Shown here piece after piece: positions 46,781-55,491 of a stretch of DNA of 64,000 nucleotides. Position 1 is the first letter of the stretch; every line of letters begins with the position of its first letter. The DNA is from Entomortierella parvispora E1425 (Eukaryota > Fungi > Mortierellomycota). The stretch is from positions 496,001 to 560,000 of the forward strand of contig BQFW01000010.1 in assembly GCA_020891255.1 (NCBI GenBank), read 5' to 3'. Made by a program: the position numbers and the translations under genes. The notes beneath the pieces are model-generated. The model worked only from the letters and a program-made list of their open reading frames with translations. It was not told where the DNA came from and searched no databases.

Positions 46781-47189
46781 CCTTGCTCCAGACGTGTAAA
46801 GTGTAAGTGGAGCTGGTCAGAATGATAGATTGTGATCAAAGTGGATAGAAGCGACAGATCTTGGAGGGTAAGGCTATTATTGTATGTATGACTGACAGGA
46901 CACAGAAAGCGGTTACTTTTTAACGTCCACTCCTGTTTTTTATACCTTCCCTCCCCTACCCCTACCCCTACCCTTCCTTTCTTTCACATTTGTCTCGGCC
47001 GCTATTCTGTTTGATCCCAGATCCCTCAAAATTATGAAAGAAAAGCTGAAATCATTCTGCCTCACCCCAAAAGCTCCAGATTTCTACAAACCGCAGTTTC
47101 TGGAATGTCGAAATTAATTGGAGATGTGCGCGCTGGGGAGTGGTGGTTAAGAGCTGGCGAATAAAGTCAATGATGGTAAGTGAAGGCTT

Positions 47190-47480
47190 TATTACAGACA
47201 ACATGTTTTTGTTGACAATACTACATTCCTCCAATTCCTGGAATGGCTGGCTTACTATCCTCCCACGAAAAGGTCTTTTCGGCAATGTGGAGGTACTTCT
47301 TAGTGTCCCAGCAGTAATAATTCTGTCCACCAGTGTAACTGTTCACGCAAATCCTTGTTGTGTGTTATCCTTACAGTGTCTGTCAGCATAAAACGGAAGC
47401 GTAAACAAAGTAAGTGGGTCGATTTGAACTCGGGCTAACAATTATAATAGGGCCAGAAAGCAATTTGATCTTAGAGTACT
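47190..47480 (-). ncRNA. Candidate Fanzor omegaRNA region
   Basis: The region lies directly 3' of the Fanzor ORF and has three consecutive hairpins at 47190-47293. The position matches known Fanzor/TnpB loci. Confidence 0.35.
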
Positions 47481-50400
47481 TACATAACTCAGACAGATAT
47501 CCGCGTCCGCTTCGGCATCTGCTTCGATGCGAGGGGAAAATTTTTGGTATCCAGGTGGTGACGCACTGGTGTCTGTTGTTGTTGGGCACGCCCAAGCGGG
47601 GGCCTGTGGGTCGAACGGCGCGATTGGGCGGCGTTCTGGTGAGAGCAGGAGCGAAAATCCTGCCAAAGCAATGTTCATCGATGCGTTCGTGTCTCTTCCT
47701 CTCTGTGTGTATCCGCGCCTGAATGCAGCACAATCTGGATTAAAACACTCGACTGCCCCATGTAGCCGGACCAGCTTGTGGATGCCTCTTCGCCACCGTC
47801 TCCCTCTTGCAAGTCGAAGCAGCTGAAAGCATAGCGGGCACGTCTGTGAAGAAAGATGTTCGTTGGTCTTGCAAACCGGAGAGGAGCACATGTGCCTCCG
47901 AGGGATTTTACTACCACCCATTTTAGCGCGACCCTTTAGACGGGAGCCTACGCCAGAACCAGCGGCGCCGTGTAAGAATAAGGGTATTACTCTGGGCTTG
48001 GTCTTCGGACAATCGGTAACGTGCTTCAGGATTAGGCGACGTTTGGAGGGGTCTTGTGGATCTGGGACAAGCTCGGGTCGGTGGTGTGTATTGCAAGAGG
48101 TGCACTGTCCGTTCTTCTCTAGCTTTTTCGTGAACGCATCTTCACCTATTTTCAGAAAAGTTTGCAATTAGTACGATGTCGTTTGTCGTTGTATCTCACA
48201 AAAAAAAAAAAAAAAAAGCAAGACTGAAGACTAAAGACTAAAGACTGAAGTTGCAAGTTGCACGACTTACCGCAAGGTTGCTTCCCGAACGCTTTCCTCT
48301 CTTCAGCAGCTGCCCTGTCATATGTGCGTTTCAGCTCGAGTTCTCCTCTTCGGCGGCTGTTCTTCATTTTTCTTGACTGTTCAAAGCCTTGAAGAGTCGT
48401 GCGAGTCCCTCTCCGGATTGTCTGGGCTTGCTCAACGTCCTGGATGCAATGCGCTTTTTTAATGGAGTTCTCGGCCAGCAGAGAATGGGCGTCCGACACG
48501 GCTCTGTTGGATGAAATCAAGCGACGTCGTTTCTCTGCCCTCTTATTCAATCCAGCATGGTGGCGTAGCTGCTGAGTGGTTGTCTGGTGCGCATCAGGGA
48601 ACTTCATACTCTCAAGTGACGGCAGTCCATCGTCCGGGTCCTTTCCATCCGCCAAGACCTCAAATCTGTTCCGAAGTTTGATGAGCGAAGCCATTGGGAC
48701 TGGGACGGTGTTAAAAAGTATGTGGGACCCTGGGTCCGTTCCCCCCGGTACAAGTTGCACTTTGCGTGCCGTTGGATCTGCATTGTTGGCGTCAATATCG
48801 CGTAGAAGTGTGCTGATATCAACGGACTCGGTCTTGTTCATACAGCCCGGTCGGCTCAATGTTGGGGTGGTCATAGTTGGAGCGTCAGGTTGCTCCCTGT
48901 CCTTCTTTTTTGACGGTGCTGACAAGGAGGATTTGCTGTATCGGTCGTAGTCGTACTTCTTCTGCCGCAACCTTTTGAGGGCAACTTTTTGCGGAATAAT
49001 TTGACGTCGTATGTCGTAGAGCTCTGGCCGATCCTTGTTCAAGCAGTCCTCGACCTCTGCGCTTTCGTCGGCCATGTGATCGTCTCCTTTGAGCTGCTGG
49101 AGTTCTGATTTGTATTTTTTAACCGATAGCTCTAGTTTTGCTGCTTGGCGATTTAGACCCTTCATGTCAATTTCGCTGTCCTTAATCGCTTCTCCCAACT
49201 CTGCCGCTCGTTCCTTGGCCGTAGACTTGTCCAACTTGGACTCTTTCAATTTCAACTGTCGGAGGTCTGCATCCGATGGTTGCCAGTTCTTGCTTGTAGC
49301 CTTTTTGCCTCCTTTCTTTTTCGTCAAGTCCGAAGGTGCGCCTAGTTTTGTTTTACGCCCCAGGATCCGTACAGTCTGGTGGTCAACAAACATCATCCTA
49401 CGATCGTTTTAAAGTTCGATAGAAAATGAGGTGCGTTAGAAAAAAATGCTCTGAAAGTACCATGCCTCTCTTCACCAGCTCTGCATCGCTTACCTGTTCG
49501 CAAACTCGAGTCCATGTGCTTTGCAAATGGAGCTTACTGTCTCCATTTTGAAGAACGCGGCAAAGATCAGAGAGGAATGATCGACTGCTAGCTCTGGTTT
49601 GGAAAGTAACTCTCCTCGCTGGCTGTGGACGTCAAAGTGTCCCTTGTCAGGACAACATAGGACTTGTGTCAATCCTATCGATCCTAAAGGAATGGCATGG
49701 ATGCTACCCGCAGACGAGATGGGAGAAATCTCTCTGGTGAAATCTTGAAATCCCATTGCTCGTAAAAGTAGATTTGCCAAGTAGACGAATGGTCCCGTTG
49801 CCATTATGTGCCGTGGAATATGGCCAGATTGATCTTTCCTCGGGGCAAATGGGCGAAGCAGGTTAACGATTCCTGCCGCGACTTTGATCTCGTCGTGCAG
49901 GAACTTGTGGCCCGTGAACAAGTAAGCGCGGAAGTCATCGTCCGTGATCACGGTCGGAAGATCCGCTTCTGACAAGTCCAGCAGTTTGCAGATGACTACT
50001 TCCAACCCCTTCACGTGCTTCGATGTAGGTTCAGCTTTTCGCGCTATCATGAGATGAATGAACGTGTTAATACTCTACTCACCGAGTACAAATACAGTGG
50101 CCACACACCATCACTGTACCTTGCTTGGCCTGTTGTTCGTTTACTGTCTCACTGACCTCCAACTCAGCAACAACTTCGTCGAAGCCATCCTCATCGTCCT
50201 GGTCGTAGAACTCGTCTGCCCCACTGCCATCTTCCTCCTGGCAGTCAATCCCATCTAACTCAAAGCCAACCTCAAATTCCTGGTCGTCGATCCCCTCTGC
50301 GTCCAAGAGATCGTGGCCTCCCTCGGTGGGAGCAGCAGCTGATTCGGCGTTGAAAGGAAGTGGTCCGTTCCCAATCAAATAGAGCAGCTTCTGGACTCTA

Positions 50401-52897
50401 GAGACACGGGAGCTTGGGGTCAAAGAGACCATGCCGTCGGAAAGCGAAGGATGTTCGACTTCCACATCGGTAGCTTCAGACTCCTGATCCCGCACGTAGA
50501 GTGTCGATCCTGACCAGTGCAGTTCACACTTGTGGATTGTGTGGTCAAGCTGATTCAGCAGGCTGCGATGCCTCCTTCTCGCCTGTTTGTGTCTGGATCT
50601 TGGTATCGACTTTCGTCGCTTGGCTTCCTTTCTCTTTTCTTCGGCCATTTTTTGCTTATACTCTCTAAACCACTTCTCACTCAAAGGGCGAAGATGGATC
50701 CTGACAAGGTATCGAACGACTGCCTTCTTGACGTGACCATAAATGTCCCCGCTCCAAATGTTTTTCATATTTGTCGCCATGGTCCGGATCATCTCGTTTT
50801 TCACCTGGCCCATCCCCTGCGGCGCTTTAGTGTAGTCGATGGTGGTGGTTGTGGTTTGCTGTACAATAGACGCCAATGTGTCCCAAGCTGGATGGACCCT
50901 TCCCTTACTGGTCTTTGCACCACCGACATCCTTGATCTCAGTATTGTCGTCTCCATCATCTTCCTGGTTATCTTCCTCCTCGTCATCTTCATCATCAGCA
51001 GGAGCAATATCCCCACTGTCCAGCTTTTGCTTTTTGGGCGGAGGCTCGGAAGCCGAGGCTGTTGAAATAAGTCTCGAAGAAAGATGTTGGATGGTTGCCT
51101 GATCAAAGAGGTTGAGGAGGTCGGAGTCGATATCGCTGTCGTGGTCTTTTGTCTTCACAAACTTTGTCATAAAAGTGCTGGAGACAATTCCTATCGATAC
51201 GACCGGGTTCTTCTCGAGAGAAAGATCCCTTATTTTAAAATCTTTCGGAAGGAACGACTTCAAATCGACGTTTTCCGACTGCGTGTGCAAAAGTCCCTGA
51301 CATGTCTATAGTTTGGTCAAGCAAAGAAATAAACCAATAAGTAACATGACGAGATAATAGAGCAAGCCGCCAGTCTCTTACCACTATTGCCGCTTTCCGG
51401 AGTGCAACTTGCACTTCGTCGATATAGTTGGAGACTCTTGTCTGCTTGTCCGTAAGTATCCTCTCAGCTTCTTTGTACATTCCTGGCCGGAGGATCTTTC
51501 CAAGGGATGCATCGCACATACGCAGCTCTTGCTCCTCGTCGGCTCCCTCCTTTGATGGTTCAGAGTTCTGAATGCTGCCTGATGAGGGGGACGATGAGGT
51601 GCTTGCTGGGGCTACAACGGATGCCTGAGTGCCATTGTGTTGGTGTTCCAGCACATAACCGTCCCAAATCTGTCGAAGTTTCTCTTCGGCAGTTTCCAAA
51701 TATACTTGTATCGATGAAAAGTCAGAGTTCTCTTCGCAGAGTCTGGCTTTAAAGGCTTGAGTCGTAACAGATCCCACGGGCTGACCAGTCTTAAGCTCCA
51801 TATCCCGCACAGCTTCCTGAACAATGTGTGGCGGAACCCGATTGCGCCCCAGTTCCCTCTTCTCTAAGGCTGGAAACTTCTGCTCCATCAACAAAGACAG
51901 GTCGGGCGGGCACGCAATCTTGCCTTTCATGGCCGTGTCGAAGGCTGTCTGTGCGGCGGCCTTCACAAGTCCTCGGAGTACGATCTCGCTAAAGTTGTTA
52001 CAATTGGCGGATTAGTAAGATGTGCTGGGTGCTCAGAGCAGTGTCTCAATATCAATTCAACGTACCATCTTTCTCTGATGCATTTCTTTCCAACCACAAC
52101 ATTGACAATGCCCTTGTCTTTGGTATGTCGAGCCCTTTTATGATCCCGGAACTTGGCGATAGGATTCAAAGATAATTCCGCGGTAGGAGAGGGTGTGGCA
52201 GTATAGACAGGTGTACACGACGCGCATGATAGAGGGGTGTAGGTTCGCACGCTTTTGAAAGCATCCACAGCCTCCAGCAGAACGATGGTCGAAGAGAAAT
52301 CGTTTCCATATTGTAATGCCATTGACCTCGTTGACAGCACTATGATGGTCAAACCAAGCTGTTGGGCGATAACGCGTAAAAGCAGGTTTGATGGTGGAAT
52401 GTCGATATTAGACTCGGGTGCAACCAGCTGGAAGGTTGCATGAACGGTTTTGTTCATCAGTGCGGCGATGTACGCGGAGAGAGTGTCGCTGGTTTCGTCA
52501 ACAACGAGGCCAAACTGCCGTTGGAAGATGTAGAGGGTTTTGTCGACGTTGTCGTTTAATGGAAAGCTGGCCCCGCCATCCCGAACAATACTCTCCGCTC
52601 GAATCTGGAGAGTTTCACTCTGCTGCTGTTCGTTCAAAAGGAGCGCGTTGGCTTTCTCCAAAAAAAGCGCGTCCGTAACGAATGAGAGTGCAACCTAATG
52701 GAGCAGCGAAATGCACAATCAGCATTGCGAAATCGGCTTTGCCATTTCATGACCTGGACTGACTTTAAGTCAAGTATTGGCAATACCTCTTCAAGGAACT
52801 CCATTTGCGTATCCCCAGAGTTCAATAATGAACCTGTCTGGCTGACTGTGTTCAAAGGGTCCAGATCAACGATCGACGACTCTTCTCCACTCTCCAT
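47442..52897 (-). CDS. Fanzor1-type RNA-guided endonuclease (TnpB/Cas12 homolog), 7 exons, about 1,634 aa
   Basis: RuvC-I GTDPG (D 48734-48736), RuvC-II TNEHLSSQTCPLC (E 47859-47861), ECFNPDC zinc finger and RuvC-III GRDTNASMNI (D 47691-47693). Exons 52897-52787, 52694-52066, 51988-51382, 51296-50120, 50043-49494, 49397-48271 and 48145-47442 all join in phase with GT-AG introns. Confidence 0.88.
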
Positions 52898-53078
52898 GCT
52901 GTGTATGTAGTAGTGCTTCTAGTAACAGTGCGTATGTGAGTGCTCCTTGTCGTGTATCTGTGTCTTTCGTTTGCGCGTTGGGCTAGGAGGAAAGAAACAG
53001 AGTTGTGCTCGTGGTCTTTTTTTTTCGTCTGAGATCAGTTTTATTGATCACATTGTGTGTCGTCACGTGGTTTCGTCT

Positions 53079-55491
53079 TTAGATGACTTCAACCATATTG
53101 CAGTCTTCCATTACGTTCGTCACACAGTTCCAGCACAATGAGCCAACTTGGTCCGTGATCGGTTGGTTCTGATCGACTCGAGTCTGGAAGAACTGGTTGA
53201 CACCACTTGCACCCCAGTCGCACTTGGTGACGGTAACCTTTTTACCTCTGCCGTTTTGGGTAATACACTGTGGGTCGTTCAGATTGTTGTTAGTGATATG
53301 ACCCAATCCCCAAAGGCCCTTGCAGGTACCGTTTCGTTGGGTGTTGGCACAGTCATCCAGCTTCTGGGCAATGGTTGTGGCATTGGTGTTACACTTGGCC
53401 AAAGCATCCTCGCATGCAGCCTTGTCGGCGTCACACTTGGCGGGATCCACGCCACCGTTCTTGCACGCATCCAAATCGGCCTGGCATTTGGTCTTGTCTC
53501 CAGTAGCCTCCGTGTTGGCGGCTTGGCACGACGCCAGACCCGCCTCACATTTGGTCCTGTCGATCACACATTTAAGGCTGTCATCCTTGCACTTGGGGAC
53601 GTCGGTCTTGTACGCGGCGTTAGCGACCATGCACTTCTCCTTGTCAGCAAGACACGAGTCTCGATCAGCTTCGCAGTTGGACTTATCGTCATCACCTGTC
53701 GAGGCGTTGCACATGTCCAAATCTGACTTGCACTTGTCGTTGACTGCATCCTTAATGGTGCCGTTGTTCTTGCAGTGAGCCAACTCAGAATCGCACACGG
53801 CCTTGTCTGCACCAGCAGAGTTGTTCTTGCACGAATTCAAGTCCTTGTCGCACTGGTCCTTCTCGGCATCGGATTTACCAAGATCTGTCTTGCACTTGGC
53901 CGTATCAGCATCATCAGCGGCTGCATCTGCTCTGCACTTGTCCCCGGTGGACTTGAGACAGGTGGCGTTGAACCTAAGTTGTTAGGTCAAAAGTTGTCAG
54001 TAAGATATTACAGGAATTCAAGTCGTGTTCGCAACCTATCCTTTGCCATTGTCAAAGATACTTACTTGCAAAGAACCAAGTCTGACTCGCAAGTGGGAGT
54101 GGTCTTCTTGCATTCATCATTTTCCTTGTCACACTTGCTCTTGTCTTCCTTGCACTTGTCAGTGTCTGCCTTGGTCTTATCACGGCCGTTGTTGCAGTTG
54201 TCCAGTTCTGTCTGGCAGCTGTCACCGCCACCAGTGCTGCCATTTGTGCACTGAGCCAGGCTCGTTTGACATTTCTTGTTGTCGGCATCGCAGGTGGCCT
54301 TGTCATCCTCGCACTTGGTCTTGGCATTGTCAATGCTGGTCGAGTTGAACCTAAAATGGTCAAGGTCGAAAGCGTTAGTAAGGCCAATTGGTTGTGGGAT
54401 GAAGCCATCTTTTGCGTACAGAGCTGTCAGGGTAAGCTTCGGTTTGAGAATAGGGGGGAAAACATACTTGCAAAGAACCAATTCGGACTCGCAGTTGGGG
54501 CGTCTGTTCTTGCACTCACTTTCCTCCTCGCACTTCTCCTTGTCCTTTTTACACTTCTCGTTATCAGCTCCAGCGGCAGTGTTGGTGTCCTTGCACTGGC
54601 CAAGATCCGTTTTGCACTTGTCATTGTTAGATCTAAGGCCGGTGTTGGTATTTTTGCACTGGTCCAAGTCTGATTTGCACTTATTGTTGTCCCTATATTG
54701 ATTAAAACAAGTATCAAACATAGCGTATTTTTTTTGGTTACCAATCATGTCGCCTCGAGTTTGCCCTTGCGATACTCAGTCATATCGTTGCCTTACCTGC
54801 ACGACTCCAATGCTGATTGACACTTCTCCTTATCATTCTTGCACTGGGCACCGCCTTGCCTGTCTTCGCAGTCCTTGATCTTCTGATTCGTGCCGTCCAG
54901 TTCTCCGGAAAGCTTGTCTTTTTCACTCTGGCATTCCTGAAGCTTGCGTCCGCAATCTCCAGCTCCATTGCAGGAGGCGAGGTTCGACTTGCAGGTTTCA
55001 GTCGTCTTGATGATTTCACCGGTGGCATCGCGAATCTCCTTTTCACGCTGCTTGCAGGCCTCCAGCTCCTTCGTGGAAGTGCCGTTCTTGCATGCCGCAA
55101 CCTCGGCCTCACTCGCTGCCAAAGCCATTTGGCATCGAGTACCACTGGCTATCCTCTCTCGTGCATCCTTCAGCCTCTGCAAGGCTGCGGCGTAGTCCGC
55201 CTCTGCATTAGTTGTGACGCCGGTAGAATGCAGCTGCAGGAGGGCAAGGGCCTCTCGCGAGTCGGCGATGGTCTGGAGCAACTTCTTGATATAGGCCTCA
55301 GTCTCGGCATCACACTTTCCTTTCGTGAGTTGATGGTGACCAGGGTGACGAGGATGAGAGTGGTGATGATGCTTTGAGGAGCACAAATTGCCAAACTCAA
55401 GGCCAGACCCCGGAGTTGAGGCGGCAGCTGGGTCTGCTGCCACGAGTGATAGATATACTATCAAGAGCAAAAACGCAAGCAATCGTCTCAT
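53079..55491 (-). CDS. Secreted Cys-heptad-repeat protein A with a shortened ricin-B-like C-terminal domain, 4 exons
   Basis: Signal peptide MRRLLAFLLLIVYLSLVAA, a coiled coil, repeats such as KCEADRDSC, and C-terminal CITQNG...TKCDW...QFFQ...SLCWNC. Exons 55491-54797, 54692-54468, 54350-54066 and 53973-53079 join in phase. Confidence 0.8.

Follow-up and report, generated by a model that had tools for sequence, protein, structure and literature searches.

Gene organization and homologues

The window analysed here is a stretch of 64,000 nucleotides (nt) from the fungus Entomortierella parvispora E1425 (assembly GCA_020891255.1, contig BQFW01000010.1, positions 496,001 to 560,000 of the forward strand), and all positions are counted from its first letter. 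On its minus strand, between 52897 and 47371, lies an intron-containing gene whose predicted product of 1,626 amino acids (aa) ends in a putative nuclease of the Fanzor1 type, akin to TnpB and Cas12. The original prediction had joined the minus-strand open reading frames (ORFs) of this region through frame-compatible GT-AG introns into one coding sequence; indeed, all the listed ORFs are present and the junctions are in phase. The introns are short and phase-compatible, with GT-AG borders, fungal-type donors (GTAAGT, GTACGT, GTAAGA and GTAAGC) and branch sites of the form CTAAC or CTAAT. For instance, intron 2 combines the donor GTACGT, the branch site CTAAT and the acceptor TTTAG.

Exon 1 (52787-52897, aa 1-37) opens with the ATG at 52897 and, with its weak GTATTG donor, is the least certain one; its junction with exon 2 is of phase 0. 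Exon 2 (52066-52694, aa 38-246) encodes an N-terminal domain that aligns with the N-termini of the family (alignment A4). The N-terminal extension continues through exon 3 (51382-51988, aa 247-449; family alignment A3) and exon 4 (50120-51305, aa 450-844), the latter contributing acidic tracts and a basic cluster that resembles a nuclear localization signal (NLS). The putative Fanzor core begins in exon 5 (49494-50043, aa 845-1027), which covers part of the WED and REC domains, and proceeds in exon 6 (48271-49397, aa 1028-1403) with a coiled-coil insertion in REC, the RuvC-I motif and a helical insertion. Exon 7 (47484-48145, aa 1404-1624) carries a CxxC..H..C module, RuvC-II, a zinc finger, RuvC-III and an unconserved tail overlapping three hairpins. 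It is followed by a terminal intron of 104 nt (47380-47483; donor GTAAGT, acceptor GACAG) and by exon 8, of only 9 nt (47371-47379, ACACTGTAA, Thr-Leu-stop), which stops at the right end of a mobile element.

The length of the coding sequence depends on a few junctions. If the terminal intron is retained and the last exon runs from 48145 to 47442, the resulting seven-exon version measures 4,914 nt and encodes 1,637 aa with zero internal stops; removal of this intron, with the end at 47371, gives the eight-exon version of 4,881 nt and 1,626 aa. Moving the acceptor of intron 3 to the in-phase alternative at 51297 yields the previously proposed length of 4,905 nt, but the accompanying count of six introns did not hold: the seventh, terminal intron very probably exists, so that the gene ends at 47371 and not at 47442. 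The donor of intron 4 is ambiguous, since four in-phase sites (50152, 50119, 50095 and 50089) are available in an acidic tract that is not conserved. Intron 6 contains, at 48188-48228, a homopolymer of 18 nt (A on the plus strand) and then short AGACT repeats, where short-read contigs break.

An exhaustive search with exon 7 as the query returned 335 relatives at E<=1e-3, and the gene is one of hundreds of family members rather than unique. The long annotated members (1,285-1,823 aa) all belong to Mortierellomycota, with the genera Mortierella, Actinomortierella, Linnemannia, Gryganskiella, Lunasporangiospora, Dissophora, Modicella and Entomortierella; every one of them bears the name "hypothetical protein" and lacks a Pfam domain, and a Pfam search of six long relatives gave no above-threshold domain. 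Among the relatives found, the family is restricted to Mortierellomycota, and its pairwise identities range from 25 to 60%. The nearest full-length relative, GJJ70720.1 (P0184), is likewise from Entomortierella parvispora and is annotated with 1,626 aa. It is colinear with aa 36-1599 of the model at 37% identity, and the alignment is unbroken over the splice junctions. A colinear homologue spanning aa 23-1591 is present on the metagenome contig L001, and introns 4, 5 and 6 lie at identical protein positions in the metagenome relatives L001 and L005. Judged from these signals and homologues, the gene model is far beyond chance.

Certain database members measure no more than 700-800 aa (P0007, P0054 and P0062) and align from aa 838-887 of the model, exon 5 beginning exactly at their start. 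Such an arrangement would be expected if exons 1-4 were a gene of their own, upstream of a Fanzor limited to exons 5-7, about 780 aa. However, each short entry stems from a short contig, is flagged as partial or falls in a 90% cluster with long members, and a start codon context is missing from the 5' end of exon 5. Moreover, P0184, P0023, P0056, L001 and others have the N-terminal region and the core in colinear order, and N-terminal profile searches return this family only. Since the two parts are colinear in relatives and the positions of introns 4-6 are shared, the N-terminal part appears to belong to the same gene, and a division into two genes is most improbable.

Fanzor1 signatures and predicted fold of the C-terminal part

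The motifs on which the first assignment of the protein was based were all located in the spliced product: GTDPG at aa 1247-1251, TNEHLSSQTCPLC at aa 1497-1509, ECFNPDC at aa 1536-1542 and GRDTNASMNI at aa 1553-1562. They contain the RuvC-I aspartate D1249 (48734-48736, exon 6) and, within exon 7, the RuvC-II glutamate E1499 (47859-47861), a zinc finger of the C4 type (C1506/C1509/C1537/C1542) and the RuvC-III aspartate D1555 (47691-47693). The proposed D-E-D order with a split zinc finger was thereby borne out, and D1249, E1499 and D1555 are conserved across the family. In the 45-row family alignment, the three catalytic columns read D in 37/37, E in 29/30 and D in 29/29 rows, and the four zinc ligands are nearly invariant.

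The arrangement of these residues follows published descriptions of Fanzor proteins. The motif D-X(125,275)-[TS][TS]-X-X-[C4 zinc finger]-X(5,50)-RD (Bao and Jurka 2013, PMC3627910) is found here as D1249, 252 residues, S1502-S1503-Q-T-C1506xxC1509...C1537x4C1542, 11 residues and R1554-D1555. Two further Fanzor hallmarks, a DPG at RuvC-I and an alternative glutamate six residues before the CxxC (Yoon et al. 2023, PMC10711439), correspond to GTD1249-P-G and to E1499-HLSSQT-C1506, the glutamate standing exactly six residues ahead of the CxxC. Across the family, the D and G of the DPG motif are conserved, with P between them in 14 rows and Y in 18. Furthermore, E1499 and D1555 align with E541 and D606 of the Fanzor1 of Spizellomyces punctatus, SpuFz1, which coordinate the catalytic metals, and SpuFz1 is also the best sequence match in the PDB (E 0.016, the aligned segment starting at the glutamate, crossing the zinc finger and closing with RD). 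Two elements are additional. The CxxC..H..C module (C1418-C1449, 48009-48104), upstream of RuvC-II, has its ligands in 25/25, 26/27, 20/26 and 25/27 of the family rows, and the alignment with SpuFz1 did not show it; a coiled-coil hairpin of ~100 aa, specific to the family, occupies the REC region at about aa 1075-1190.

The fold was examined on the family member P0007 (802 aa, 29% identical to the window core), and the evidence it provides is at the level of the family. The AlphaFold model of P0007, built with the 45-row alignment, has a mean predicted local distance difference test score (pLDDT) of 80.7 and a predicted template modelling score (pTM) of 0.69. In a Foldseek search it gave six significant PDB matches, namely SpuFz (four entries), PpFz and Cas12o, with a top E of 5e-5, followed further down by GtFz and other Cas12 types. 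By VIA, the model matched SpuFz with a Z of 13.8, model residues 91-762 being aligned with chain residues 36-633. The combined order of the Foldseek and VIA matches was SpuFz, then PpFz, CasPhi, Cas12o and Cas12f, and sequence identity over the fold aligned with SpuFz1 was 14-18%. These results agree with the expectation that the best match in profile and structure searches would be a TnpB, Fanzor or Cas12 protein, SpuFz1 standing first both for the predicted fold of P0007 and for the PDB sequence match. They point to a predicted WED-REC-RuvC-TNB fold nearest to the solved Fanzor1 structures. The signatures support the assignment of the last ~780 aa as a Fanzor1-type, TnpB/Cas12-like nuclease, and from the sequence we infer that the protein may be catalytically competent and programmable.

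Conserved hairpins and a terminal intron at the 3' end

Three hairpins (47490-47569, minus strand) lie within the last 110 nt of exon 7 and constitute a candidate scaffold of a guide RNA (omega RNA). RNAalifold and pair counts on alignment A7 place the arms of helix 1 at 47569-47566 and 47554-47551, those of helix 2 at 47532-47526 and 47519-47512, and those of helix 3 at 47504-47500 and 47494-47490. In an alignment of six sequences, 93.8% of the cells are paired and helix 2 shows compensatory pairs at 5/7 positions. A covariance model (R1) built on these six sequences recovers the element, in the corresponding position, from family loci of soil metagenomes outside its training set (L013, L025, L016, L020, L017 and others). 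With 15 distinct rows, 90.5% of the cells are paired, compensatory change is seen in 14 of the 16 pairs, the covariation score is 0.484 vs 0.06-0.13 for slid controls, and none of 500 shuffles reaches the observed values on any of five measures. The 15-row alignment was fitted to the covariance model, which favours the structure, yet the slid controls are still far lower. Since the protein tail encoded over these conserved hairpins is not itself conserved in the family, the constraint would appear to act on nucleic-acid structure.

The hairpins are directly followed by the terminal intron. In P0184, the protein ends with NY|AQ*, in which "AQ*" derives from a 9-nt last exon placed after an annotated terminal intron, and the repeat ends exactly at the stop codon. 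The window has the same layout, with the donor GT at 47483, the acceptor AG at 47380 and a last exon that ends at the repeat boundary defined by reads. Over the terminal-intron donor, a block of 25 nt is identical at 23/25 positions between the window and the P0184 locus, although the two proteins are only 37% identical; a pattern scan of the metagenome contigs for this block gave no match. The same order at the right end, namely hairpins, GT donor, 88-135 nt, YAG, 3-9 nt and the element end, is observed in five lineages (the window, P0184 of E. parvispora, L001/L002/L014, L020/L024 and L033/L041), whose right ends were set by copies with different flanks.

Because the guide RNAs of TnpB and Fanzor proteins are encoded at that very place, the hairpins are likely to be a guide-RNA scaffold. 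The same features could, in turn, be cis-acting signals: the hairpins might serve for transposase binding or form in single-stranded DNA, or they might, together with the terminal intron, control splicing, stability or 3'-end formation, and the protein would then perhaps be a nuclease guided by RNA encoded elsewhere or unguided. Indeed, covariation shows pairing and cannot separate RNA from single-stranded DNA, the hairpins sit right at a splice donor, the folding energy of the whole 3' region in the window is not out of the ordinary, and the 3' element found no match in Rfam. On the other hand, the guide scaffold overlaps the 3' end of the ORF by the right end in every studied TnpB and Fanzor (PMC10432273, PMC10711439), which is exactly where these hairpins lie, and they are kept across lineages whose protein tails diverge at this place. 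A role as cis-acting signals is therefore the less probable of the two, but it deserves serious consideration.

A different hairpin was observed at the right end of a relative from Mortierella sp. GBAus27b (L006:9300-9345). It is a perfect 7-bp hairpin, CCCGTGA-GCAA-TCACGGG, situated 13 nt before the end and followed by TTTCAG|CTAGTT. The last 246 nt of this element fold better than all 200 shuffles (z -3.09).

The gene is carried by a multi-copy repeat

The gene is contained in a repeat unit (47371-53065, minus strand) with a well-defined right (3') end at 47371/47372 and an approximate left end near 53065. Contigs of the DNA run X1, which is probably the sample behind the window assembly and as such not independent support, were aligned with 47000-52950. 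Their word depth is 298-319 over the gene vs 69-78 for unique flank contigs, and the interval 47050-47370 is at single-copy depth (77.9). At the boundary 47370/47371, loose ends lead to two other flank sequences, which makes three different 3' flanks. On the left side, a high-depth contig of 254 nt reaches ~115 nt beyond 52950, to about 53065. These data suggest that about four copies, >99% alike, exist in the source strain and that the gene is carried by a young multi-copy mobile element. Of the 34 listed differences that separate the window copy from the short-read consensus, none causes a stop or a frameshift.

In runs X3, X5 and X9, from other isolates with the same species label and compared over 47000-52950, the exact element is absent, and pieces 77-88% similar to the first and last exons are found instead; these diverged pieces indicate that family members vary between strains. 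An exact look-up of the exon-6 ORF for further copies returned no record, and a search of the window with the covariance model revealed no 'ghost' copies lacking the ORF. When the window was compared with L001 at the DNA level, only the coding sequence aligned and the flanks did not.

Relatives are repeated as well. In Mortierella sp. GBAus27b, three copies of a relative are 98% identical over ~7.3 kb and have sharp ends. On contig BQFW01000004.1 of Entomortierella parvispora, a relative belongs to an element (L009:328-8466) present in two copies, 99.5% identical over 8,143 nt, with perfect 9-bp terminal inverted repeats (TIRs), TTATTGTGC/GCACAATAA. Upstream of its giant Fanzor gene, this element contains an unannotated ORF (1283-1858) with a DDE_3 domain of the Tc1/mariner type (E 1.9e-17). 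Compared to the 8.1-kb L009 element, the window element is compact, ~5.7 kb.

The copies also bear on whether the locus could be a domesticated or decaying relic, that is, a host protein or dead transposon gene that retains RuvC-like motifs and has lost the role of an RNA-guided nuclease. The huge N-terminal extension is unlike the tested Fanzors, the window copy has no transposase, and dN/dS (the ratio of nonsynonymous to synonymous substitution rates) among the copies is near neutral, all of which would suit a relic. Nevertheless, the ~four copies are >99% identical and free of stops and frameshifts, the element is missing from other isolates, and the relatives too are multi-copy. Furthermore, the catalytic residues and all zinc ligands are kept across a family with identities of 25-60%, and a relic is thus improbable.

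Proposed mode of action

The most plausible explanation, to which we assign a probability of about 0.72, is an intact gene of eight exons (52897-47371, minus strand) encoding a Fanzor1-type nuclease of 1,626 aa, which would fill almost the whole of an element of ~5.7 kb present in about four near-identical copies, use RNA from the 3' end as its guide and carry an N-terminal accessory module. By this proposal, the protein would bind RNA from the 3' end of its own element, as SpuFz1 and TnpB do, with the hairpins as the scaffold and the read-through into the flank as the guide. The matching DNA, either the empty site left by excision or an unoccupied allele, would be cut, and repair after the cut would restore or spread the element. 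The N-terminal extension of ~840 aa would act as the accessory module.

Several observations weigh against this proposal. The splice junctions are predicted from sequence signals and homologues, and the fold was predicted for P0007, a relative 29% identical, and not for the window protein. The core family profile (A1) matches the PDB only weakly, with a best E of 0.013 to 8GKH. Similarly, Pfam PF07282 (Cas12f1-like_TNB) scores 17.8 bits (E 0.0039), under its cut-off of 26.3 bits, and a Pfam search of all exon ORFs revealed nothing beyond this sub-threshold hit. PF07282 matches at E<=0.1 in only 3/15 family rows, and the weak score is probably explained by a family too diverged for the profile. 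At the 3' end, helix 3 is weak in the window copy and the last 280 nt of the element in the window fold no better than shuffles (z -0.10). As for the element itself, an inverted mate of its right end was found neither at 52898-54200 nor anywhere in the window, and the window showed no target-site duplication and no transposase or DDE ORF. Finally, the dN/dS of ~0.63 (28 coding changes) gives no clear sign of purifying selection among the young copies, a value as expected for very recent copies.

A bolder version of the preferred reading takes the terminal intron into account. The guide RNA could be split by a spliceosomal intron, splicing joining the scaffold to the last 9 nt and the flank-derived guide while the sequence of the transposon end is removed; alternatively, splicing could decide whether a transcript serves as mRNA or as guide RNA. 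In either case, the N-terminal ~840 aa would add a new functional module to an RNA-guided nuclease. We regard this combined scheme as speculative and rather doubtful.

The N-terminal extension

The N-terminal ~840 aa are conserved at 20-37% identity across the family, with motifs that include HPLW and NLWxGxIY, and contain, besides the acidic tracts, the basic NLS-like cluster at aa 672-696 (50565-50639). Pieces of this region gave no Pfam match, the profiles A3 and A4 gave no match against the PDB, and a word-indexed profile search returned family members only. AlphaFold predicts a helical structure of low confidence (pLDDT 65) for the extension of the L001 homologue, and this model has no Foldseek match in the PDB at E<0.3. 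An Atlas search of the extension yielded weak matches only.

Language-model features of exon 2 (52068-52694) are nearest to giant-virus proteins, some of them OTU-bearing, with scores of 0.83-0.85. A relation to OTU was rejected as unsupported, since exon 2 gives no Pfam or PDB signal and the window copy has no conserved Cys or His.

Comparison with known systems

SpuFz1 (PDB 8GKH, 9CEU-9CEZ) is the top PDB match of the window protein by sequence and of P0007 by predicted fold. The two proteins have in common the DxG of RuvC-I, the glutamate six residues before the finger, a second half-finger CxNPxC and the RD of RuvC-III, and both genes are multi-copy and transposon-borne. SpuFz1 is encoded by one uninterrupted ORF of 638 aa, and its 2.1-kb element has inverted repeats of 30 nt (PMC10432273). 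The window protein, with 1,626 aa vs 638 aa, is indeed more than twice its size, as the original prediction had stated, and about 2.5 times as large as is usual for this type, and its gene differs by the eight exons, the ~840-aa N-terminal extension, the ~100-aa coiled-coil insertion, the CCHC module and the terminal intron by the right end.

Fanzor1 genes linked to Tc1/mariner elements (Bao and Jurka 2013; Fanzor1c of Jiang et al. 2023) resemble this family through the 9-bp TIRs and the DDE_3 ORF of the L009 element. The right end of the window element reads ...CACTG-TA and resembles Tc1-type ends, but, unlike those elements, the window copy has neither a DDE ORF nor a detectable left inverted repeat.

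Prokaryotic TnpB (IS200/605, IS607) has the same core of RuvC and zinc finger, and the stretch between the 3' end of the gene and the right end, here the site of the hairpins, is the expected source of its guide RNA. It measures about 400 aa, has no introns and carries its glutamate mostly ~50 residues before the finger (PMC10711439). The window gene does not fit this canonical prokaryotic type in glutamate position, length or introns: the glutamate is in the Fanzor position, the protein has 1,626 aa, the gene has seven spliceosomal introns and all the relatives are fungal. In addition, and again unlike TnpB, a spliceosomal intron lies between the hairpins and the last 9 nt of the element.

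Fanzors with introns and NLSs, as well as Tc1/mariner-linked Fanzors, have already been described (PMC10530073, PMC3627910), and Fanzors have been called compact, about 600 aa (PMC10530073, PMC3627910). In the accessible part of the supplement of Saito et al., one Mortierella Fanzor of 677 aa is listed and 0/6 accessions of the giant family appear, which is no proof of absence. An incomplete search of the literature found no paper joining Fanzor and Mortierella and no description of this giant clade of Mortierellomycota proteins, of the extension at their N-terminus or of a terminal intron that adjoins the right end. New here are the three strongly covarying hairpins that close the long exon and the terminal intron behind them, with its acceptor 3-9 nt short of the right end in five lineages.

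The interest of the locus comes mainly from this conserved extension and from the architecture of the 3' end. Tested Fanzors measure about 450-700 aa, and this locus represents an entire clade of Fanzor1-type proteins in fungi, with sizes 2-3 times larger. If the proposed reading is true, the N-terminal 840 aa may show what eukaryotic RNA-guided nucleases add for chromatin or host factors. The combination of hairpins, terminal intron and last exon of 3-9 nt in five lineages would likewise raise the question of how one transcript can accommodate both a spliceosomal intron and a guide RNA. As for the near-identical copies within a single strain, they would indicate recent activity of an element that is amenable to study in culture.

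Upstream neighbour

Upstream of the element, the minus strand carries at 53079-54850 a gene for a Cys-rich protein, made of diverged periodic repeats of 21/63 nt (families D1 and D2). The start of the Fanzor element appears to lie within about 15-45 nt of the stop codon of this neighbour.

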